In this document: positions 1 through 61,300 of the stretch, piece by piece
How the letters are laid out: every line of letters begins with the position of its first letter
Numbering within the stretch: the stretch's first letter is position 1
The notes under the pieces: generated by a model
What the model was told of the DNA's origin: nothing
Database searches by the model: none
Seen by the model: only the letters and a program-made list of their open reading frames with translations
Assembly: GCA_964035545.1 (NCBI GenBank)
Contig: OZ037770.1
Coordinates: forward strand, 9,058,973 to 9,122,972
Length of the DNA: 64,000 nucleotides
From: Bugula neritina
Lineage: Eukaryota > Animalia > Bryozoa
Reading direction: 5' to 3'
Translations under genes and position numbers: made by a program

Positions 1-1703
1 AGAAATTTATAAGTATTTTATGCCTGCAGAATCCTAGTATTAAATAAAGCTAAACTCAAGAATAGTTATATGATGATATGAAAGTAGGAAAAAATAACAA
101 AATATAAAAGCATGAACAAAATTGAACATTTAATTATCAAATACATTGATAATACAATTTTTTATTAATTTTTAATATTTTCTGGTCAACACAATATTAT
201 AATTGCGCAATAACGCTCATACTTATTAGTATTAAATAGCAATGTCCTTTTATTCGTTGGGTATTATTATAACCCATTTTATTAACCATAAACTCTAGTT
301 TTTATCTTAATTACCTATCATGTTACAACTATAACATATTGGGTGATTATGATCACAGTTTCATTAGGAATAAGCTCAAACATGTTTTGCAGTCACCCAG
401 TCATTGGCAAAATAATATGGGAACTATTCTAATATTAAGAATTTACTAAAAGTGTTGTTAACCAGCACAAGGGTATAGAGCACTCCCATGAGGAATTAGG
501 TTTCAATTTAGTTACTTAATTTATTTAAATTGCAACCTCCAATGTTCATTTTGGAGAGGGGATTTTTTGTATATTTTTAACAAAAACTTGACTGTTCTTG
601 TTTCTCTAACCATTTGCATGTTACATGCAAGTTGAACTGTCGGAAAGAGAAAGAAGACAACCCATTAAATCAAAACCTTATGCCACCAACTCTACGAAGC
701 TGGAGATATCTAACATGAAACTGGCATTGCATATAATAAGTTAAATTTTCATGATGTAGAGCAGCTTCCTTGTGGCAATCTTCCAAAGAGGAAAAACAAA
801 GTTATGAGTGCGAAATGTACTAACAGTGAATTAAAAAATGCTGATAGCAAATTACATCAGGTAAGTTAATTGTAATTCAAATTTGTGCTATTTATAATTT
901 GTATCGTAAGGAAATAAAAAACTTATGCTCACATTGGCTTTCTAGCCCAAGGTTTGTGCATCTGCGTATAAAGTGTAATTGAAATATATTTGCATAAAAT
1001 AAACTGCAAGTCAGTTTATATTTTAGGCAAAAGCATAAAATGAATATTTTAGATGTGTGAGCAATAACTTTGCTACTTGTAGGAAGGTAGGTGCAGTATG
1101 TAGAAATTGAGAAAAACCTGTGTTCTAGATTAGAAATGTAGCAAAAGAAGCTATGTTTTTAAAAGAACTTCAACTCACACCTTAAACCAAAACTAAATAA
1201 TAAAATTAGAAAACTTGGACTATCTCAATTTTTCCACTACTGCTCCTAAATGCCTGTAGGTGGCCACGTTTCCCAAGTACAACTTGTACTCTTAAGTTAT
1301 AATGTTTATCCTAAAATAACAGTGCATATTTGAATGTCAATAAGCCCTACCTGTAATTTAAACAGCTGTAATAACAACCTATTGATTAACCAAATTTGTT
1401 TGTCAACATCTGTCCATTTTAATGGGAAAGTACATAACCTGTGTCTTACGACTGGCTGTGAATTTTAATGCACAATGAGACATGTCTATTCTTCACTATT
1501 TTCTTTGTTTTTATACTAAAACATTATTTTTGTTCTGATGAGACTGCTACTTGCTTTGTACACCTTCAATGCCTAGTGAACTAGAACCAGCCACTACTTT
1601 AGAGTAATAAATTATATCACAATTTGTCTAAATTTGTCTCAGTCCAGCTAAATAGTAAATAGAAAATTATTAAAGAAAAGTGGTCAGTAAGAACAAAAGG
1701 TGT

Positions 1704-1916
1704 CATGAAGTTGGACTGTATGTTATAACTAAATACTGTGTGTTATAACTCAATACTATACTTAGCCTACTTATAGCTACATGAGTGAAAGTCCCTTGCC
1801 TTTACATGTGATTGCAATAAACGGTTTCATGAAGCTGGACTGTATGTTATAACTAAATACTATATTTTCTTATAACTACATGAGTAAAAGTTTCGTGCCT
1901 TTACATGTGATTGCAA
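1704..1916. repeat. Imperfect direct tandem duplication (~90-120 bp x2)
   Basis: CATGAAG.TGGACTGTATGTTATAACTAAATACT...TACATGAGT.AAAGT....GCCTTTACATGTGATTGCAAT occurs at ~1704 and ~1828. Confidence 0.75.
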
Positions 1917-2368
1917 TGCTTAGCAAATCAAAATGGCTACACTGCAAATTTGATCATATTTTATGCATCTGGCTGTACTCAAAAAGTAGACTCTTTAAAT
2001 AAAGCTCATCAAATTAGACCATTACCACAGCAACTTTTCATAGTAAGTTCAACATTATGACCACACGAAACTACTACTCAATATTAACTTTTCATATATG
2101 AGAGTCAAATTATTGTACTTATAACCGGCTAACAACCTATAAACACATAATTCTTGACCATTTAATATAATTTTTAGAAAAAATTACAATGATCAGACTG
2201 CAATAATGTATTTCAACAATACGGATGATAGGCCATGCAAAACAGTTATATTAAATTTAATATCTTTGTAAATGATAAAAGCATTTTGTTTATTTTATAA
2301 ATTTATAACTTCAAATAGGAGGACTAAATCATTCACACAAAAAAGATATCTCATTCAATGCAATTTAC

Positions 2369-2483
2369 CTGTCAGAGAATCCTTCTTAGCAGAGGTGCAA
2401 AGGTTACTTTCAAGGTCATTATACAGTTGACTGGGTTCAGTACTGCTCAAAGTTTTCTTGTTTCCTGATTTGTTGTTCTCCAT
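2369..2483 (-). CDS. Probable first coding exon of a second SLC16/MCT-like paralog continuing beyond the left edge (partial)
   Basis: Acceptor tcttgtag, then caagATGGAG, open frame MENNKSGNKKTLSSTEPSQLYNDLESNLCTSAKKDSLT and a phase-1 donor ACAG|GTAAAT. This mirrors exon 1 of the adjacent MCT gene (caagATGGAG ... RKDTLA, phase-1 donor). Confidence 0.45.
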
Positions 2484-3319
2484 CTTGTCTATCTACAAGA
2501 TATGATCTTTTAGTTGGGAATTTACATGTTTATTTGTTTATATATTTTTGCTTTGCTTGATATTTTCTGCCTTTTGAAATGAAAACATGTTTTTTAAACT
2601 TACTCATTAGCTAAAAGACAGAATTTTTCAGCCAGTTAAAATACTTGGCATTGTTGTATTGTACCTACTTTATTGAGTACACACCAGAGAATCAGAAATT
2701 AGCTCAAAATTTAAGAAAATCTTCAATTGTACTAGGCAATAGTTTGAGGGTTGGTTCTAAAGATGTATAAGAACAAAACTCAGAAAAAGTCCTGCAAAAA
2801 AGTTGTGATTTATGACAAAACACAATCATACAGAATCAGAATGTACTTGTAAAAAGCTGCAATCTTTTAGTAAGCTATATTGTGCTAGCATCATAGCAAT
2901 GAGGTAAAACATTAATACAGCTTGTAGAGCTGCAATATTTTTAGATCGCAAATAATTTACAATTTTATGTGGAATATAATGTTCTCAAAAGAATTAAATA
3001 ATATGATTATGAGCAGTGATGTAATAATCAGAACTGCACCTTGTGCTTTTTAACTAGTAATTTAACCAAAAAATATACAGAAAAGCAGCAAAAGTTGAAC
3101 AATTTATCATTTTTCGTTGAAATGATTTTTCTTAAATTCTTTCTGTTTTACTCACCAGATCTGTATTGTGTTGTCAGTCCTATGGTGATACATGGCAGTA
3201 TAAACAGGTCTTATATAACAGCTCTGGCCAATAACAAAGCATTTTATTACATTAGTTGTGGAAACAAACTGATTATGATTATTACATGAAAGTGCTGAGT
3301 GTAACCAGTTCAGGAAGGC

Positions 3320-3845
3320 AATGCCTCTTTTGCAATCGACATGACGGGGATGACTGTTTTACAAATCAGACCTTGATTTGGTTGCCTCTCTCCACACGAC
3401 TTTGTCCTTATAGCTGTCACTCTCCAGGAACTAAAATTCTCTACTTCATGTTTCTCATGGCAATTTTTTTAAATCTATGTCGATGTCTTCCTCTCTCTTT
3501 TTTTCTTCCGTTAACTGTAAGCTAAGCATTTGTCTTAGTAGTCAGTCATTTTCCATTCTGTCCACATGGCCTAACCATTTTAGGTTCTTTTCTATAAGAA
3601 TGTCAGCCATGCATGGCAAGTTAGGATTTCATCATCATGATATACTATTTTACAGCCACTATCTGTCGTAATTTTCTCATCATAAAAGTGGTAAGCTTCT
3701 TCACCTGTCTTCAGTATATTATATTCCATGCTTTATAATATATCTATAGTATTTACATTTAACTTTTATGGAAACATGTCCTTGCTCTACGTAACTTCTG
3801 CTAGAGCCTTCTGTAAGCTTCACTTGCTTTGCTCATTTACCTGTT
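3320..3845 (-). mobile_element. Degenerate RTE-clade LINE 3' fragment
   Basis: Broken minus-strand translation: MSKASEAYRRL*..., EKLTTFMMRKLRQI..., EKNLKWLGHVDRMEND*LLRQML...RGRHRHRFKKIAMRNMK. This matches the RTE ORF C-terminal motif (LRWLGHVxRM...RGRPRxRFKD). Confidence 0.7.
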
Positions 3846-42545: not shown

Positions 42546-44995
42546 TAAAGTGAGAGTCCTGAAAGTTACTGCAAGCTGAGCCTAGCTTATCTTCAATATT
42601 TCTTGCGATATGAAAGGTTTATTGTCATAATTTTTGTTGTAAAGATGACTAATTGGCAGTTATAAAAAAGTCATGAAAAGTTGCTCTAATACTCTGTAGC
42701 TATTTTATAATAGTAAAATTTCATCAAATTTGCTTATTCCAAGTTTTTCTTTTTCTAACTTGCAAGAATGATTTCACTTATTTCATGACCCCCAATTTAA
42801 TGCTTGAGAGAATAGATCAAAATTGTTGAAGCAGACAACTCCTTTATATGCAGCTAATGAAGGAGAGTGTATCAAGTAAGGCTGAGATTTGAAGAAATTG
42901 TAAAGCAAAATATGAAGATAGATAAATATGGATAAAGATAGCTGGCTAATGCAGGCTAAATATGGAGACGACTGGACATGTTTGATTTAACCAAAATGAA
43001 AACACTTTTCTCTAATTGACAGATTGCAATGATCATCAACTTGTTGGTATTTTGTTATAGGTATAATTTTGTGTTAAACATTTAACCTTAAATAAAAAAT
43101 ACAATAATTTGTAAAAGTGCTTGGTGTTCCGTAAAAAAGTAATCAACAATATGTATAGCTTATTTGGGACAGTAATAAATATAGGTAAGAGGTAAACCTA
43201 TGATTTCATGAAACTATACAGGTCTTTCAATATAGGACATTACACAAAACACATGCACATTGTATTTCAACCAATAGTAGATAATTATAGACATAAATAG
43301 AGTGACCACCATTGAATGTTGATAATTTAAAAACAAGTCAGCTTCATGTTTTAGTTGATTTAGCTAATACAGTGAAACTATGCAGGTTGTGCTAGGTACA
43401 ACAATAAAAATTTACTTGAGATTATTTATGTTAATGTTTATATGCTAATGGTGAAAAGTCACACAGCCTCCCACACTCTAATACAGCTCTGTGTTGAAGA
43501 ACTCAGTCTACCAAGTCAACTATGAGAATCATCTAGAAATAACAGACACAGTGTATATGTAGAAGTTGTACATCTCAAACATATCATCACAAATATGTAC
43601 ATTAGTAGAAAACACAGAGTTGAGCACCAGATGTATTCAAACAGAGTCTAGTGAGATAAACACTATAATAAATGTACCACAAGATGGAATAATATTCTGT
43701 CACACACCTGTTTAGTTTAGCTGGTAAAACAGAACTTTCTTCTCATTCCATCTAGGTACAATGAGAGTGTCTTTATACACATGAATATCACACACACTAC
43801 TCTCAGCTCTATCAGTTGGATCTTCTACTTTGAACAGTTGTGTACCTGTAACAGGAAATGATGTATTAGTGTGTCATCACTAGTACATAGCATAGTATAT
43901 TTTATAGTGTGAGACTGTGAGAAATGCTAATATATTGGTAACAGTAGTTAACTAACCAATGTAAAACTAACCTGTCTCCACATCCAGTATCCAGATGGTG
44001 GTTTTACTGCTGTAGTTAGTCACAAGAATATATTTACTTCTATAGCAGGTCACACCTTGTGGTCGAGATACATCCTTGCATGTCCAGATGACTTTCTCTG
44101 TTGTCAAGTCTAATTTAAATACTTGAGAAGAACTAGAGTCAGAAACTACTACACAATGTCTGTCTGCTGCACAGATTGCTGTATAACTATTACTGAATAG
44201 AGGGCAGGAGACATGTTTAATTACCTCCCCAGTAAGAGAGTAGATTGTAAGTCTTTTACTGTGTCTATCAGGAACTACAACCTGATCATCAACAATAACA
44301 AGTTTGTTTATACTCCCACAACTGTCATGGTGAGACCAGCTGGTCACCTGTTTCCCAGTAAGATCATACACATTTACCATCCAATAAGCACCGAAGATAC
44401 GCTGTAGAGCATACAGCTTATTCCTATGTACTGTGACTCCAGTTACTGTGTTAGTAATAGAAGAAAAAGACTTGGAAACACTGAAACTCTCATCTATTCT
44501 GTCTATCCCTGCACCACTCAGCCCTACATAAGTGTTACTCCCATATTTACAGACAGAATAACAGTAATTAGAAACATCAACAGACTGTACGAGTTTGAGA
44601 GATTTAGGAGGATCTAAACTAATGATTATGTCTGCTGCAGGAACCAAGTCTATTTCTACATCTCTCTTCTCTTCTACAATATACATGTGAATATGTGTGT
44701 ATGTGTGTATACTTATATATAAGTGAGTATGTATATATAATATGTATGTCATATAAAAGTGAGTAGGTGTATAAATTCTATTAATAGAAACTCTGAGTAA
44801 ACCTACACACAGGGCTATTTCAACAGATATTCAATTTTTCCAACCAGCAGTTTCACACACATGAAGAGCACTATCAGATAATAATATACTGATCAATATT
44901 GATGTTCATATATTACATTATATAATGCATATACACGATTATTACAAAGTTTTTATTAATATCAGTAATATAATAATGCGGGTATGCACTAGATC

Positions 44996-45778
44996 AGCCA
45001 TGCTTAACCTGCGGCCTTTTGACGGCCTTTTGAGCTGGTAAATGTGGCCTTTTGGTTTTTTAGTAAAAATAAAAATTTAGTTCAGTTTCAATCCTTCCTG
45101 AAGTTTGCTTTTTACTAATTCTCAAGTTTACTATATGAATCATGACTGCTAGCACATATTGATGTAAACATTTATTTTCTTAAATGGGGTCTGCCAAAAG
45201 CAAATTCAGATTAAGGCCAACAGACTCCTATCTGGCCGATATCCTTCACACATCAACATCGGACATTAATCCATACTGTGTTCTGCTCAATGTACAAAAA
45301 ATGCTCACTTTGCTGAACAAATCAAGTTATTCTCCTGGATCTTTTTTTTTCATAAAATGAATATGATTTTATGTAAAAATGGCACCGGTGAAAGAGGCAC
45401 GGTAAAAATGGCACAGCTAATAATGGCACAAAAAGAAAGTAGGTAAAAATGGCAAGCTGATGTTAAATCTTTCCAAACCCCCCACCCAAACCCCCCACCC
45501 AAACCCAGGCGCCTAACCCTCAACCCCACCCCAAACCCTAATATTGAAAATAAAACATTTTTACCTACTTTGTCACTTGCGCCATTATTACCTGTGCCAA
45601 TATTACCTGTGCCACTTTTACCGGACATTAATAAATACACATAAAATTTGAAAATGGGCTTTAATTATTAATATATGGAGGGTTTTGACCGTGAAAATTA
45701 CACTGAACTTTCTAGTGGCCTTTTTGGTAGCTCAGGGTTATTTTACAGCCTTTTCCCAAAAAAGGTTGAGCACTAGAT
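44996..45778. mobile_element. Old hAT-like non-autonomous element with a nested element; shared by both duplicates
   Basis: CAGCCATGCTTAACCTGCGGCC ... AAAAGGTTGAGCAC ends flanked by CTAG-containing sites; counterpart at ~58053-58785. Confidence 0.4.
45372..45623. mobile_element. Non-autonomous element with inverted 15-bp subterminal repeats (GGTAAAAATGGCAC) and a CCTAACCC/CCCAAACCC core
   Basis: Repeated TAAAAATGGCAC at left, GTGCCA.TATTACC at right, C-rich telomere-like core; partly deleted counterpart at ~58437-58630. Confidence 0.6.
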
Positions 45779-52380: not shown

Positions 52381-55300
52381 TTAGTTTAGCTGGTAAAATA
52401 GAACTTTCTTCTCATGCCATCTAGGTACAATCAGAGTGTCTTTATAGACATGAAGATCATACACGCTACTCACAGCTCTATCAGTTGGATCTTCTACTTT
52501 GGACAGTTGTGTACCTGTAACAGGAAATGATGTATTAGTGTGTCATTATAGTGTGAGACTGAGAAATTTTATTATATTGGTCATTGTAGTTAAATAACCC
52601 CCTGTTCCCACATTGCCGTATCGTAAACCGTAACAGCGCAAACAAAGTGGCGCACTGTTACATTTTGTCAACAGGCGTTCACACATTGACGTAAAGTACA
52701 ACGCATGACGTTCAGCTGTGACCAATCACAATGAGGTTAATTCTTGTCTGCGGTGACTTGTACGCTTTTGGATATTATTCACAAATTTGTCGCAACATTC
52801 TTCTCAAAAGATATGATAAAAATGTTATTGACTAGATAAAATCAATTTAAAGAAGAAGTCTCTCTTTTAAATACATGAGTCTTTAAAATAATTGTGCAAA
52901 CTAATTTGAATAATAAACATTCAGGTCGTCCAATTAATTTTTTGGTTTGTGTGCTTTTGTGATTAGTGAAAGCTAAATTTTTAATTGTTTAATCTTTAAA
53001 AACTTTTAAATTGGTTAAATTAAATCAACAATAAACGATTAAAATAAACTAGCGAAAATGTTCTTTAAATGTTAGTACCAGATCAACTCAATCAAGCACT
53101 GCTTGATCACACATATACGCATATACTGGGATTCAGCCCGAATGTTATCAAATATGGCAGAAATTTGCAGTTATGGCGTGTGTGTGTGTGTGTGCGTGTG
53201 CGTGTGTGAACAGGGGGTAACCAATGTAACACTAACCTGTCTCCACACCCAGTATCCAGATGGTGGTTTTACTGCTGTAGTTAGTCACAAGAATATATTT
53301 ACTCCTATAGCAGGTCACACCTTGTGGTTTAGGTACATCTTGGCATGTCCAGATGACTTTCTCTGTTGTCAAGTCTAATTTAAATACTTGAGAGGAATTA
53401 CAGTCAGAAACTACTACACAATGTCTGTCTGCTGCACATATTGCCTTGGAACTATTACTGAGTAGAGGGCAGGAGACATGTTTAATTACCTCCCCAGTAA
53501 GAGAGTAGATTGTAAGTCTTTTACTGTGTCTATCAGGAACTACCACTTGGTCATCAACAATAGCAAGTTTGTTTACATCCCAACTATTATCGTGATGAGA
53601 CCATCTGGTCACCTGTTTCCCAGTAAGATCATACACATGTACCTCCCAATTAGTGTTGATGATACGCTGTAGAGCATACAGCTTATCCTTATGTACTGTG
53701 ACCCCAGTTACAGAGTTGGTAAGAGAAATGAATGACTTGGAAACACTGAAACTCTCATCTATTTTGTCTATCCCTGCACCACTATGCAGCCCTACATAAG
53801 TGTTACCCTCATATTTACAGACAGAGTAACAGTAATTAGAAACATCAACAGACTGTGAGAGTTTGAGAGATTTATGAAGATCTAAACTAATAATCATGTC
53901 TGCTGCAGGAACCAAGTCTATTTCTACATCTCTCTTCTCTTCTACAATATACATGTGAATATAAATAAGTATACGAGAAACATTGTTGATTTCTTACTTT
54001 ATTAGGTAAAGTAATTATACTGATATTTCGGGTACCACTGTACCCATCTTCAGAGTAGCAATGAATGTAATTCAAAAATTATTACGTTACGTTAGACGTT
54101 ATGCATGACACAAAGAATAGAGAATGGCAGTTATTGTAAATTATTAAAACTCAGGGAGATAGTCTTATTTTATATATTACGCAGGTCAAGAATTATATTG
54201 ATTTTTTTGCATAAAAATTAAATTAGAGTTGACAAAAAAAAAGATATCCAAATATAAAAACAGCAAGAATTAGTGAAACTATGTGAGAGTTGAGTAGTGT
54301 GGAGCTATTGATATAGTTTTAGTGGTATGGAGTAATTTTGTTTATTGAGTTGCGGTTTTATTTGTTTAATGTAGAGAGCTTCAGCTACCTTTCGATGGTG
54401 GATTCCTTTAAATGAATGATTTAAAACTGTTACATTGTCTATTGATATGTTTCCATGATTAGTGGTGGAGATGTGTTGATAAATTTTGGAATTGATGTCA
54501 TGGCAGTGTTCATGTATCCTGTGTGATAGGCGACGTCCGGTTTCGCCTACATAGGTTTGTCGACAGGTAGCTTCAGGGCAGGTTATTTTGTAGACTAGGT
54601 TGTGAATGTGTTCTTTATTGGTTTTATCTTTGAGATTAAAATGTGAACTTAAGGGGGTTCTTTTAAATAAAATCCGGGCATTGAGTTCATTTGGAAAAGA
54701 GTCTGTAATTAATTTATTGAGGGAGCGGATTAGTTTTTCTCCTGTTACTCCTTTATAAGGCAGTTGGAGTAAAATGTGTTTCCTGTTGTCTTTTTCACTG
54801 AGTAGTCCGTCACCAATGTTGTTAATAGTTTTCTCTATTACATGTTTAGGGTAACTATTTTTATGTTCAAAATCATTTCGAATATAGTTTAGTTCTTGGG
54901 TCTTAAGTGCTGGAGTAGAACAGATTTTATTAGCCCTTAATACTAGTGACTTGAGTGTGCTTAGCTTCCATGTTTTTAGTGAGAAAGAGTTCCAAATTCC
55001 AATGTAAATATGTATCGTTATGTGTTGGTTTGCGGAATACTGTGGTTTCCACTGAGCTATTGTGTCGCAAAACTGTAACATCCAGAAAAGAAAGTGATTT
55101 ATTGGTTTCTAGTTCGTGTGTAAATTTTATGTTAGGATGAAAATTATTAAGTGTGTTGAGTGTTGTGTTAATATAATCAGGGTCTATTGTTGCAAATGTG
55201 TCATCTATGTATCTCAACCAAGGTGACATTGAATTCAATTTTGGTATTACTTTCTGTTCTAGTTTTGTCATGAATATATTCGCAACTATTGGTCCTAGAG

Positions 55301-58300
55301 GAGATCCCATAGCAACACCATCCCTCTGTGTATAAATGATGTCGTTGAAAGTAAAGTGAACTTGTTTTGTACAAAGGTTGAGTAAGTTTATCATTTTCTT
55401 CTTTGGTATAGTTGTTTGGATTCGTTGTTTCTCATAAATATCATTTATGATTGCTGAAATCGTGTAGTCAAGTGGTACAAAAGTAAAGAGGGAAACAACA
55501 TCAAATGATATCAGTTGATGGTTTGCTGGAATATGAAGTTGCCGTATATATGTAAGAAAACTATCGGTTGATTCGATATTACTTTCAGATTTACCAAGTG
55601 GTTTTAGCATTTTAGCCAGGTATTTCGCAAGTTGGTATGATGCAGGTTATTCTACTTATAAGGACTAAATAAAAAAGCAAACTTAATTTCTTTTGAAGAT
55701 ATTGCTTGACTTCAGTGATAGATTGTTGTACCTTTTTTTTCTGGTAGTGTTTGTTCTTTAATTCCTGTTCCATAATTAGTTTCGAAATTTTAGCTTTTAA
55801 TTTGTAGTTCTCACCAGGAATAGACAATTTCACTTGAGAAAATGTAGGAGATAAAGATTCTCTTTTGCAAATTAGAATATAATTTATGTCAGCTTTAATC
55901 TTTGTTGATTTAATCTTGAGTGATTCGTAACGTCTTGCTGATAATCCCGTGTTTCTCTTCGATTAATTTAAATATATCTTTACGAGCTAGCAATTTGATT
56001 ATAAATAGGTATACGAGAAACATTGTTGATTTATTACTTAACATACCAACTTGCGAAATACCTGGCCAAAATGCTAAAACCACTTGGTGAATCTGAAAGT
56101 AATATCGAATCAACCGATAGTTTTCTTACATATATACGGCAACTTCATATTCCAGCAAACCATCAACTGATATCATTTGATGTTGTTTCCCTCTTTACTT
56201 TTGTACCACTTGACTACACGATTTCAGCAATCATAAATGATATTTATGAGAAACAACGAATCCAAACAACTATACCAAAGAAGAAAATGATAAACTTACT
56301 CAACCTTTGTACAAAACAAGTTCACTTTACTTTCAACGACATCATTTATACACAGAGGGATGGTGTTGCTATGGGATCTCCTCTAGGACCAATAGTTGCG
56401 AATATATTCATGACAAAACTAGAACAGAAAGTAATACCAAAATTGAATTCAATGTCACCTTGGGTGAGATACATAGATGACACATTTGCAACAATAGACC
56501 CTGATTATATTAACACAACACTCAACACACTTAATAATTTTCATCCTAACATAAAATTTACACATGAACTAGAAACCAATAAATCACTTTCTTTTCTGGA
56601 TGTTACAGTTTTGCGACACAATAACTCAGTGGAAACCACAGTATTCCGCAAACCAACACATAACGATACATATTTACATTGGAACTCTTTCTCACTAAAA
56701 ACATGGAAGCTAAGCACACTCAAGTCACTAGTATTAAGGGCTAATAAAATCTGTTCTACTCCAGCACTTAAGACCCAAGAACTAAACTATATTCGAAATG
56801 ATTTTGAACATAAAAATGGTTACCCTAAACATGTAATAGAGAAAACTATTAACAACATTGGTGACGGACTACTCAGTGAAAAAGACAACAGGAAACACAT
56901 TTTACTCCAACTGCCTTATAAAGGAGTAACAGGAGAAAAACTAATCCGCTCCCTCAATAAATTAATTACAGACTCTTTTCCAAATGAACTCAATGCCCGG
57001 ATTTTATTTAAAAGAACCCCCTTAAGTTCACATTTTAATCTCAAAGATAAAACCAATAAAGAACACATTCACAACCTAGTCTACAAAATAACCTGCCCTG
57101 AAGCTACCTGTCGACAAACCTATGTAGGCGAAACCGGACGTCGCCTATCACACAGGATACATGAACACTGCCATGACATCAATTCCAAAATTTATCAACA
57201 CATCTCCACCACTAATCATGGAAACATATCAATAGACAATGTAACAGTTTTAAATCATTCATTTAAAGGAATCCACCATCGAAAGGTAGCTGAAGCTCTC
57301 TACATTAAACAAATAAAACCGCAACTCAATAAACAAAATTACTCCATACCACTAAAACTATATCAATAGCTCCACACTACTCAACTCTCACATAGTTTCA
57401 CTAATTCTTGCTGTTTTTATATTTGGATATCTTTTTTTTTTGTCAACTCTAATTTAATTTTTATGCAAAAAAATCAATATAATTCTTGACCTGCGTAATA
57501 TATAAAATAAGACTATCTCCCTGAGTTTTAATAATTTACAATAACTGCCATTCTCTATTCTTTGTGTCATGCATAACGTCTAACGTAACGTAATAATTTT
57601 TGAATTTCATTCATTGCTACTCTGAAGATGGGTACAGTGGTACCCGAAATATCAGTATAATTACTTTACCTAATAAAGTAAGAAATCAACAATGTTTCTC
57701 GTATACTTATTTACAATCAAATTGCTAGCTCGTAAAGATATATTTACATGTGAATATGTGTGTATGTGTGTATACTTATATATAAGTGAGTATGTATATA
57801 TAATATGTACGTCATATAAAAGTGAGTGTGTGTATATATTCTATTAATAGAAACTCTGAGTAAACCTACACACATGGCTATTTCAACAGATACTCAAATT
57901 TACCAACCAATAGTTTCACACACATGAAGAGCACTATCAGATAATATACTGATCAATATTGATGTTCTTATATTACATTATATAATGCATATACACGATT
58001 ATTACAAAGTTTTATTAATATCAGTAATATAATAATGCGGGTATGTACTAGATCAGCCATGCTTAACCTGCGGCCTTTTGACTTTTGGCGGCCTTTTGAG
58101 CTGGTAAATATAGCCTTTTGGTTTTTTAGTAAAAATAGAAATTTAGTTCAGTTTCAATCCTTCCAGAATTTTGTTTTCACTGATTCTCAAGTTTACCATA
58201 TGAATCATGACTGCTAGCACATATTGATGTAATCATTTATTCTCTTTAATGGGGTCTGCCAAAAGCAAATACAGATTGAGGCCAACAGACTCCTATCTGG

Positions 58301-61300
58301 CCGATATCCTTCACACATCAACATCGGACATTAATCCATACTGTGTTGTGTTCAATGTACAAAAAATACTCACTTTCCTGAACAATTCGAGTTATTCTCC
58401 TGGATCTTTTTTTTCATAAAATGAATATGATTTTATGTAAAATGGCACCGGTGAAAGAGGCACGGTAAAAATAGCACAGCTAATAATGGCACAAATGGAA
58501 AGTAGGTAAAAGTGGCAAACTGATGTTAAATCTTCCCAAACCCCCCACCCAAACCCAGGCGCGTAACCCTCAACCCCCACCCCAAACCTTAATATTGAAA
58601 ATGTGTAAATCTTACCTACTTTGCCACCGGACGCCAATAAATACATATACAATTTGAAAATAGGCTTTAATTATTAATATATGGAGGGTTTTGACAGTAA
58701 AAATGACACTGAACTTTCTAGTGGCCTTTTTGGTGGCTCAGGGTTATTTTACGGCCTTTTCCCAAAAAAGGTTGAGCACTAGATTCTAGAATAATAGTGT
58801 AAGTAATCTACAGTCTAGTTTATCAACCTTTGACCTTTAACATCACACAGCTCTAGTTTAGTATACTAACCTTTGACCTTTAGAGACACGGCATCACACA
58901 GCTCTAGTTCAGGTATCTCAACAGATATCAGTCTCTGTATTTTATCTTTAATTTCTGCAAATCCTTCAATCAGATCCACCTACAGTATATAAGCATAGCA
59001 TTAGCCAGTGGGACTGAAAAGACAGTCTTTCTAGTTACAACTTCCTATTGTTTTTCTGCATTAGTTCACTTAAAGTTATGAAAGTGTGGTGTGCCTGGCA
59101 TGAACATATTGCAGCAAAGTACCTATTCAAAAACGCTATGGCTAGTTTCCTATTTAGAATTAAAAAAAACTTTGATTTAGGCTGACACAACTTTACAACA
59201 ATTCTTTTAAATACAATTTTGTAACACACTGGAGTTTGCAAGCACACAACTATAGAGCTAATACAGAAATGAATAATCAGGCATTGTGATTGTCAATCTA
59301 ATTATTTCATCAGATTTTTTTAACTCAAAGATTCACAAAAACATAATCTAAATATATTTAGCAAACAGATGGTAAACACTGCTCACCTGGTGGTTTTGTT
59401 TAATTTGAGCTTCTATCTTCATTCTACTGTTACTCAGTTGAGACAAAACAGTTCCAACTTCTCTCTCCATGTATCTGTTTAGTTCTTGGTTAGTCTTCTT
59501 TCTACTAGCTAAGAATTCCTTCTCAAGTTTCTCATACTTTAGTCTCACTTCAGTCAACTACATCATACATTGTATCAGCACATTGTAGAAAGTGGACAAC
59601 ACATCAGAGAAAACTTTTTCAGAATTATGTTAAACAATAGTTTGAATCTTTTTGCATAATATTTCTAAATTCTTAGATAAAAATAGTGTTTTAAATTACT
59701 CTGAATAGTAGCTAGACACCTAGCTGTTACTCCTAAATATTAGTATTGCAATGTTTTACTAACACCTGACTACAGAATGTAGATTACAGAGTAACACAAA
59801 GTATTTTCTATAAACCTGTTCATCACGCTGTGTATGAAGAATATTCAGCAATTCCTCCGTCTCATTATCAAAGTCTGACACAGTTTTAGAAAGGTGTTTG
59901 AAGAAAGCAGACATCTTGTCTTCACTGGTGAGAAGATCATCTATATTGATTAGCTCTTTGATTAAGTCATCTAGATTAACCATGTGGTGGGGTGAGTCTA
60001 AAATAGAAATAAAACACCACATTCAACGTGACTATTGCAAAACCATGACAAAAGTTAAAAAGAGCAAACTTCAAACAGACTGTACAAGTGAATAGCATTT
60101 GAATATAAAAACAATTCACTCTTATTTAATAAAACACTTTTAACTACAAAAAGCACAAATTTCACATTCAGTTATTTCGAGTTATAAATGTTTCACTATT
60201 GACCCTTTTCCAACATTCTTGCTACTCAATTTATAATTTACAGTTGTTTTCTCCGAGTAGGGATCAATGTATAAAACACAGAGCTGGCTATAAATTTCTA
60301 ATGGTGCTATTCACGAGCAGCCCTCACAGTGTAATGGGTAGCAGATTGACTTAAGTTGGAGGACTGCAGTTTGATTTCAGGGGTAGCATTCTTATAAGAT
60401 TTACTGAGGTGGCTATACAGTTTATCAGATTTACTGAAATTTAGCAAATAACAAAAGTCTTCTTACCTCCAACACACAAGTTAGTGCAAGATGTGCACTG
60501 CACACAGAACAGCTGAACACAGACTTTACACCCTTGTATGTAGGGATATGCTGTGTGTTTGGGACAAACTTTTCTTTCCAGTCTCTTGGCTTGTATTCTG
60601 TAGTCAGAGATGGTCATCTTCTGATGGTCATCACTGGTGTCATCATGTGACTAAATATAACAGAATACATCTTTACTGAGAAATATAACTCCCCTGTGCA
60701 TATAGTGGCAAAGAAACCAAAATTAAAAATATATGATCTAAACATGTATATATATTTATAGTAAAGTAACAATTTCAATCAGCACATAGTCTAAAAATAA
60801 ATGCATAATCTGCATAAAAACAGTTAAAACAGATAAAAGTGAAACATGATTTCTTAATGTTTTATTACATATCAACATTCAAATACAACAATATGTAATA
60901 AGAGGCTGAGTTAGAGTATGCAGTGTTGAACATCAACTGAAGAAGTATTTAATGAAAGTATCACCTCATCATGTTTTCTGCAAAAGAGTTTACGGCACAC
61001 AGTACAGTATATGACTGCTGGTACTTTTTTCAGTCCCTTTTTAGTGCAGACGTCACATGATACGGAGTTTTCTGCGACATCAGCAGAAGGAAGATTCTCC
61101 ACTCTCACATCAAACACTTCCCTGTCACGAGACACATGTTTGTATAGCAATAAACAGAATGCAATATATTAGTATAAGGTCAAAAATATAATCTAAATTG
61201 TCTCTCTACCAACAATATTTCTCAGCTCTGTCTATATAAAACTAACTTACCTACACCAGGGACACCTGATCATGTCATTCACATCAACATTACGAGTAAG

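Follow-up and report, generated by a model that had tools for sequence, protein, structure and literature searches.

A minimal hammerhead motif of a Penelope-like element in the last intron of a TRIM/NHL-like gene of Bugula neritina, a probable passenger on a young insertion

A hammerhead ribozyme motif in the last intron of a TRIM/NHL-like gene was analysed in a stretch of 64,000 nucleotides from the bryozoan Bugula neritina (assembly GCA_964035545.1, contig OZ037770.1, positions 9,058,973 to 9,122,972 of the forward strand), hereafter called the window and numbered from its first letter. The motif is very probably the own minimal hammerhead of a Penelope-like element (PLE), carried as a passenger on a young insertion into this intron. 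Its architecture places it among the minimal type-I hammerheads of metazoan PLEs, which are a known kind; the PLE family itself is new. The motif lies 81 nt upstream of the last TRIM exon, in host sense, in the 3' tail of a 5'-truncated PLE that forms one arm of an inverted pair. A preliminary description of the same DNA had proposed that this motif, together with a nearby AATAAA, acts as a switch on the host transcript, a proposal that the analysis does not support.

Anatomy of the motif and chance expectation

All coordinates given for the hammerhead, the AATAAA and the splice acceptor refer to the minus strand, which is the sense strand of the host gene. The elements of the motif are the following.

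54057-54018, minus: minimal type-I hammerhead, recognised by sequence inspection and a structural descriptor, with the architecture published for metazoan PLE minimal hammerheads
54057-54054, minus: helix I, 5' strand UACU
54053-54047, minus: hammerhead core CUGAAGA
54046, minus: unpaired (bulged) U after A9
54045-54030, minus: helix II of 6 bp, GGGUAC, loop AGUG, GUACCC
54029-54026, minus: GAAA
54026-54023, minus: palindrome AUAU, standing in for helix III
54022, minus: C17, with the predicted cut between 54022 and 54021
54021-54018, minus: helix I, 3' strand AGUA, giving a helix of 4 bp

The conserved core was complete, with CUGAAGA, GAAA, U16.1 at 54023 and C17 at 54022. The traits that mark minimal hammerheads were present as well: an extra nucleotide between A9 and G10.1 (U at 54046) and a palindromic 15.1-16.1 segment with no helix III loop. 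The 6-bp helix II is closed by the pair G10.1-C11.1. The motif agrees with all published hallmarks of PLE minimal hammerheads, the long helix II and the short helix I included. The preliminary description had reported a complete core on the minus strand with cleavage predicted near 54022, an AATAAA at 54003-53998 and an acceptor at 53942, and had likened the motif to the minimal hammerheads of PLEs, in which stem III is vestigial, placing it in host sense about 60-80 nt ahead of the propeller exon. On all of these points the present analysis agrees with it, at a distance of about 80 nt, each element being found at its position.

The frequency of such motifs was assessed with a structural descriptor. 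Besides the core, this asked for the pair G10.1-C11.1, helices I and II each of 4 bp or more, H17 and a palindrome at 15.1-16.1. The descriptor matched twice in the 64-kb window, at 54057-54018 (minus) and at a twin in 57622-57653 (plus), and not once in 300 dinucleotide-preserving shuffles.

The Penelope-like element, its family and its relatives

The two descriptor matches fall into the two arms of one composite insertion, which is organised as follows.

53951-53962, minus: left copy of a 12-nt target-site duplication
53963-55639, minus: 5'-truncated PLE arm with a reverse transcriptase (RT) and GIY-YIG-type open reading frame (ORF) carrying a frameshift; short tail form
55640-56041: spacer of 402 nt between the arms
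55966-56039, minus-oriented: 74-nt fragment of the PLE tail end, inside the spacer
56042 to about 57745, plus: 5'-truncated PLE arm with the twin hammerhead; long tail form
57622-57653, plus: twin hammerhead, identical motif

The composite (53963-57745) measures about 3.8 kb, lies 20 nt upstream of the acceptor of the last TRIM exon in a TA/CA-rich intron stretch, and is flanked by the 12-nt target duplication, whose right copy falls within 57745-57785. The tail of the plus arm is about 30 nt longer than that of the minus arm. Because the arms are 99.1% identical over 1.68 kb, the insertion can be considered young. Published hallmarks of PLE insertions comprise an inverted 5'-truncated copy, an optional tail of 30-40 nt at one end, which has been attributed to the use of two start sites for reverse transcription, and insertion into microsatellites or AT-rich DNA; the composite in the window displays these hallmarks of complex insertions. 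The locus is a well-documented example of a PLE minimal hammerhead accompanied by all PLE insertion hallmarks. As a side observation, the spacer segment 55640-55965 (326 nt, left of the 74-nt fragment) matched neither arm and holds a Lys/Glu-rich ORF of 73 aa on the minus strand; it is possibly what is left of the 5' part of the PLE.

The PLE ORF lies directly upstream of the hammerhead on the same strand and ends at 54305, which puts the hammerhead at +252 from the stop codon. Its RT domain was recognised by Pfam RVT_1 above the cut-off (E 3.5e-8), and 1102 homologues were found at E 1e-10 or better. A GIY-YIG-type motif, VY..C....C...YVGET.RR...R..EH, with two cysteines within the core, and a C-terminal E...P.LN were noted; both were kept in 23 homologues.

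Analysis of the 216-Mb genome yielded at least 46 scored matches to the PLE tail and 416 first-look candidates, at 94-96% identity, many of them arranged as inverted pairs. Tails and motifs were compared among 34 family copies. Most of these sit in (TA)n, and the two tail forms recur among them, usually one of each per inverted pair. The hammerhead was intact in 30 of the 34, the four exceptions being changes of G10.1 to A or of U16.1 to C; at 95% identity, intactness within the family has little power as a test of selection. The hammerhead is a family-wide feature of the retrotransposon.

The AATAAA is likewise part of the family tail, as the following features indicate.

53994-54014, minus: 8-bp tail hairpin, UUACUUUA / loop / UAAAGUAA, conserved in the family
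54003-53998, minus: AATAAA, in the loop and 3' arm of this hairpin

The hexamer was kept in 32 of the 34 copies, and the hairpin stem stayed paired through all the changes observed in it, A to G and C to U each yielding a G-U wobble. This hairpin may be part of the RNA recognised for the start of reverse transcription. Past the AATAAA, family copies continue for 35 nt in the short tail form and for about 65 nt in the long one, and they never end in poly(A), from which it would follow that the template RNA of the element reads through the hexamer. A functional poly(A) signal should stand out from the background, and this one did not: the minus strand of the window holds 103 copies of AATAAA, or 1.6 per kb. 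The intron accounts for 11 of them, ten of these lying upstream of the copy at 54003-53998, whose presence is not above chance.

Relatives of the PLE ORF in other organisms shared 37-49% identity with it, one of them coming from the hydrozoan Clytia hemisphaerica. Eight contigs encoding such relatives were examined, seven of which showed a hammerhead-like motif 89-236 nt past the stop codon. A MAFFT alignment of the hammerheads was out of structural register, and pairs were counted with a custom parser on a set made up of the window copy and the seven parsed relatives. In all eight, positions 10.2, 10.3 and 10.4 of helix II were paired, with three to four types of Watson-Crick pair at each, while G10.1-C11.1 was kept in seven. 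The bulged nucleotide after A9 was always present, as U in seven cases and as C in one (L035). The 15.1-16.1 palindrome read AUAU in five sequences, ACGU in one and UAUAUA in two, and the ending GAAAUAU-H was common to five of the eight fetched relatives (L034-L038). Two groups of variants deserve to be located.

L036:2421-2465 and L035:2544-2588, metagenome contigs of related PLEs: G3-C8 swap, with GUGAUCA or GUGAGCA for CUGANGA
L033:2580-2630, L038:3044-3091 and L031:3852-3901: sub-lineage with the helix II loop UGGAA(A/U)GU

In the first group, a compensated G3-C8 pair replaces C3-G8 in the core of two relatives. The covariation, including this natural core swap, supports the assignment of the motif to the minimal hammerheads of PLEs. 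The sub-lineage with the UGGAA(A/U)GU loop consists either of decayed copies or of a non-canonical variant. In one of its members (the ENA contig L031, at most 49% ORF identity), positions 1-3726 hold a second, opposite PLE ORF placed head to head with the first, so the inverted-pair layout recurs across the lineage.

Host gene and possible consequences of the insertion

The window holds two tandem TRIM-like paralogs, A and B, both on the minus strand, and the composite is located in copy B. The model of copy B, which was searched exon by exon, is as follows.

61399-60965, minus: RING and B-box 1
60641-60465, minus: B-box 2
59989-59813, minus: coiled coil
59557-59387, minus: exon 5, donor GT at 59386
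58979-58871, minus: exon 6 of 109 nt, ending in phase 1, donor GTTAGT at 58870
58870-53942, minus: intron 6 of 4,929 nt, 3.8 kb of which is the PLE composite
53941-53235, minus: exon 7, the last, in phase 1, encoding an NHL-like beta-propeller; acceptor AG at 53943-53942

Exon 6 ends in phase 1, in register with the phase-1 start at 53941, which supports the acceptor. A search with the last exon brought up full-length homologues of about 600 aa (P0031, P0074) that were colinear with copy B, and the acceptor is predicted from frame and colinearity. A profile of exon-7 homologues matched the NHL propellers of Brat, Thin, TRIM2, TRIM3 and TRIM71 (E ~1e-11), which bears out the label of propeller exon given in the preliminary description. 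Its statement that copy A carries an in-frame stop upstream of the propeller domain also proved correct: the stop lies in exon 5, at about 47235-47233 (minus), where copy B has a Gly codon. The propeller exon of copy A (43970-44673) is still open, and the intron before it contains no PLE. A protein search with exon 7 for transcript-derived proteins returned nothing but single-exon ORFs of genomic origin, all from JGI metagenomes and with identities of 83% or less. The gene family evolves fast and is large, the propeller giving 415 representative clusters. Intron 6 of both paralogs also shares an ORF of about 90 aa (58392-58652 and 45350-45640, minus), which probably represents a further repeat or a portion of the intron that was duplicated.

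Copy A provides an empty site, in which a single copy of the 12 nt stands directly before the same acceptor. Since the motif is family-wide and absent from this empty site, it arrived recently as a passenger and does not qualify as a conserved element of the host. The events at the locus may be pictured as follows. The PLE would have inserted into the last intron of the TRIM/NHL-like gene as a composite of two inverted 5'-truncated copies, generating the 12-nt target duplication, each arm ending in the family tail: the hammerhead, a hairpin that happens to hold AATAAA, and a region where reverse transcription presumably starts. At the level of the family, the literature suggests that the hammerhead probably acts on transcripts of the PLE, as a dimer in multi-copy RNAs, with the assistance of protein, or both. 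In the host transcript it would form the base of a hairpin, about 1.68 kb long, which closes as the second arm is transcribed. Being the outermost part of this hairpin, it is expected to remain double-stranded and uncut.

Folding data are consistent with this expectation. The isolated hammerhead fold was computed at -10.3 kcal/mol versus -12.1 kcal/mol for the minimum free energy structure, where pairing of CUGA with UCAG spans the cleavage site; a 55-nt duplex with the antisense arm, a perfect complement, reached -97.4 kcal/mol. The host transcript contains one sense motif, the twin on the other strand appearing as its complement, and the presence of a single sense copy makes a dimer in cis impossible. 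For a dimer in trans, the AUAU palindrome provides just four A-U pairs. In the literature on metazoan PLEs, no cleavage could be detected with single minimal hammerheads, and constructs holding two or three of them displayed low activity. For the Poseidon element of Anolis carolinensis, the hammerhead was cleaved only with the protein of the element, was not required for insertion in vitro, and no RNA-seq read ends were seen at its site (PMC11167929). A search of sequencing runs with the Bugula sequence gave only Logan contigs sharing 0.05-0.30 of the words, and these probably represent the multi-copy PLE tail.

Several observations weigh against reading the motif as an inert passenger hammerhead of a PLE. 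Helicases could unwind the long hairpin, or it could undergo editing, and the cell contains partners in trans supplied by hundreds of PLE copies. The GIY-YIG domain had no Pfam or PDB profile match, its call resting on inspection of the motif. Among the relatives, the eighth contig (L037) could not be parsed as a hammerhead, a non-canonical A6U occurred in L033 and L038, and GAA-UAUAUA-G replaced GAAAUAU-H in L031 and L033; it appears from these cases that the motif is not uniformly intact in the PLE lineage and decays in places. Finally, Rfam detected no hammerhead in the whole window at gathering score, nor in a 301-nt region at E up to 10.

This last result concerns the search with hammerhead models that the preliminary description had put forward as a check; run with Rfam, it gave no match. 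Rfam was equally blank on a control of six loci of the same genome with visible, more canonical hammerheads. Model RF00163 gave no match over the whole genome, and none in its control either. As Rfam also misses clearer hammerheads, its blank says little; it probably reflects the sensitivity of the models, which appear to miss this hammerhead class, and not absence of the motif. At least four other hammerhead families adjoin copies of the window PLE family, often beside (TA)n, and none of them was reported by Rfam at E up to 0.1. They have a short helix III capped by palindromic loops, which corresponds to the canonical animal type I, and include the following.

L010:2654-2719
L010:2850-2912 and 3101-3163, minus
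L015:3073-3143
L029:2033-2104
L023:1394-1456

Three ways in which the host gene could be affected were considered along with the passenger reading. The insertion may harm copy B with no part played by the ribozyme: the displaced branch-point region and the long double-stranded RNA would lead to mis-splicing of exon 7 or to degradation of the transcript, and copy B would be a decaying paralog like copy A. Just the last 21 nt of the old intron are kept beside the acceptor, the stem is long and nearly perfect, copy A already has its premature stop, and the family evolves fast, all of which speak for such harm; all mapped exons of copy B are open, however, and a branch point could come from the newly acquired, pyrimidine-rich DNA ahead of the acceptor. 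On balance this outcome seems possible but unlikely, and it is compatible with the hammerhead being a passenger. If the host gene is affected at all, the 3.8-kb palindromic insertion itself is a likelier cause than catalysis by the ribozyme.

The structure-controlled switch of the preliminary description supposes that the hammerhead cuts the pre-mRNA of copy B, or that the AATAAA polyadenylates it, before the propeller exon, that pairing with the antisense arm turns this off, and that propeller-less TRIMs are thereby produced in a regulated manner. Its geometry is as described, with the host-sense motif just before the exon and the antisense arm transcribed first, before the sense arm. CPEB3 provides a precedent of an intronic ribozyme tuned against co-transcriptional splicing, and a CA and a U/GU-rich stretch follow the AATAAA. 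Several arguments speak against it. The motif is a recent arrival absent from the paralog; minimal PLE hammerheads lack activity as monomers, are weak as dimers or depend on PLE protein, and in the one studied PLE case no read ends marked the site. Each transcript has one sense copy, for which the duplex with the antisense arm is overwhelmingly favoured. The AATAAA is one of 11 in intron 6, and family copies extend well past it with no poly(A). Masking by the antisense arm is physically plausible, yet it would be the default state, and nothing points to regulated unmasking, no regulator being in sight. The switch is accordingly unsupported, and we consider it very improbable.

A looser version is that a hammerhead freed by opening or editing of the hairpin and helped in trans by PLE protein or RNAs, or else use of the AAUAAA, ends the copy-B transcript before the NHL propeller exon and yields a conditionally truncated TRIM; we give it as little credence as the switch. 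The weakest explanation, a chance resemblance to a hammerhead in AT-rich DNA, could appeal to the blank Rfam search and is refuted by the shuffles together with the covariation at the same position in related PLEs, so that it is almost certainly wrong.

The passenger reading is thus retained for the hammerhead of copy B. The locus would matter more if RNA data showed a transposon-borne minimal hammerhead to cut a host pre-mRNA.

Comparison with known hammerhead systems

Domesticated intronic ribozymes, such as CPEB3 and the intronic hammerheads of amniotes, share with the motif of the window an intronic position before an exon and a self-cleaving-type structure in sense orientation. They are active as monomers and have long been conserved at orthologous loci, whereas the window motif is minimal, of the dimer type and carried by a young insertion. 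In place of conservation at the host locus, which characterises domestication, an empty site in copy A, young arms and hundreds of dispersed copies were found, and on these features the motif falls outside the class of domesticated intronic ribozymes.

The Poseidon PLE of Anolis carolinensis (PAc; PMC11167929) is a closer counterpart. Both elements use AT-rich targets, carry a hammerhead in their repeat region, and have an optional tail of 30-40 nt associated with two reverse-transcription start sites. They differ in that the PAc hammerhead overlaps the start of the ORF, whereas that of the window stands about 250 nt past the stop codon of a 5'-truncated copy. Cleavage of the PAc hammerhead has been shown to need the PAc protein; the motif described here is a predicted ribozyme.

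The nearest likeness is with the minimal hammerheads of metazoan PLEs (Cervera and de la Pena 2014, PMC4209133; Lunse, Weinberg and Breaker 2017, cited in PMC6765202). In common are the core, the unpaired nucleotide after A9 and the G10.1-C11.1 pair, a helix II of 6 bp, a helix I of 4 bp and a palindrome instead of helix III. Further shared traits are a place within the terminal repeats of an element with RT and a putative GIY-YIG domain, twins on opposite strands and membership in a genome-wide family. Two differences set the Bugula element apart: its palindrome is just AUAU, giving four A-U pairs in a dimer, and its family is new, no entry of the protein collection exceeding 49% identity to the ORF.

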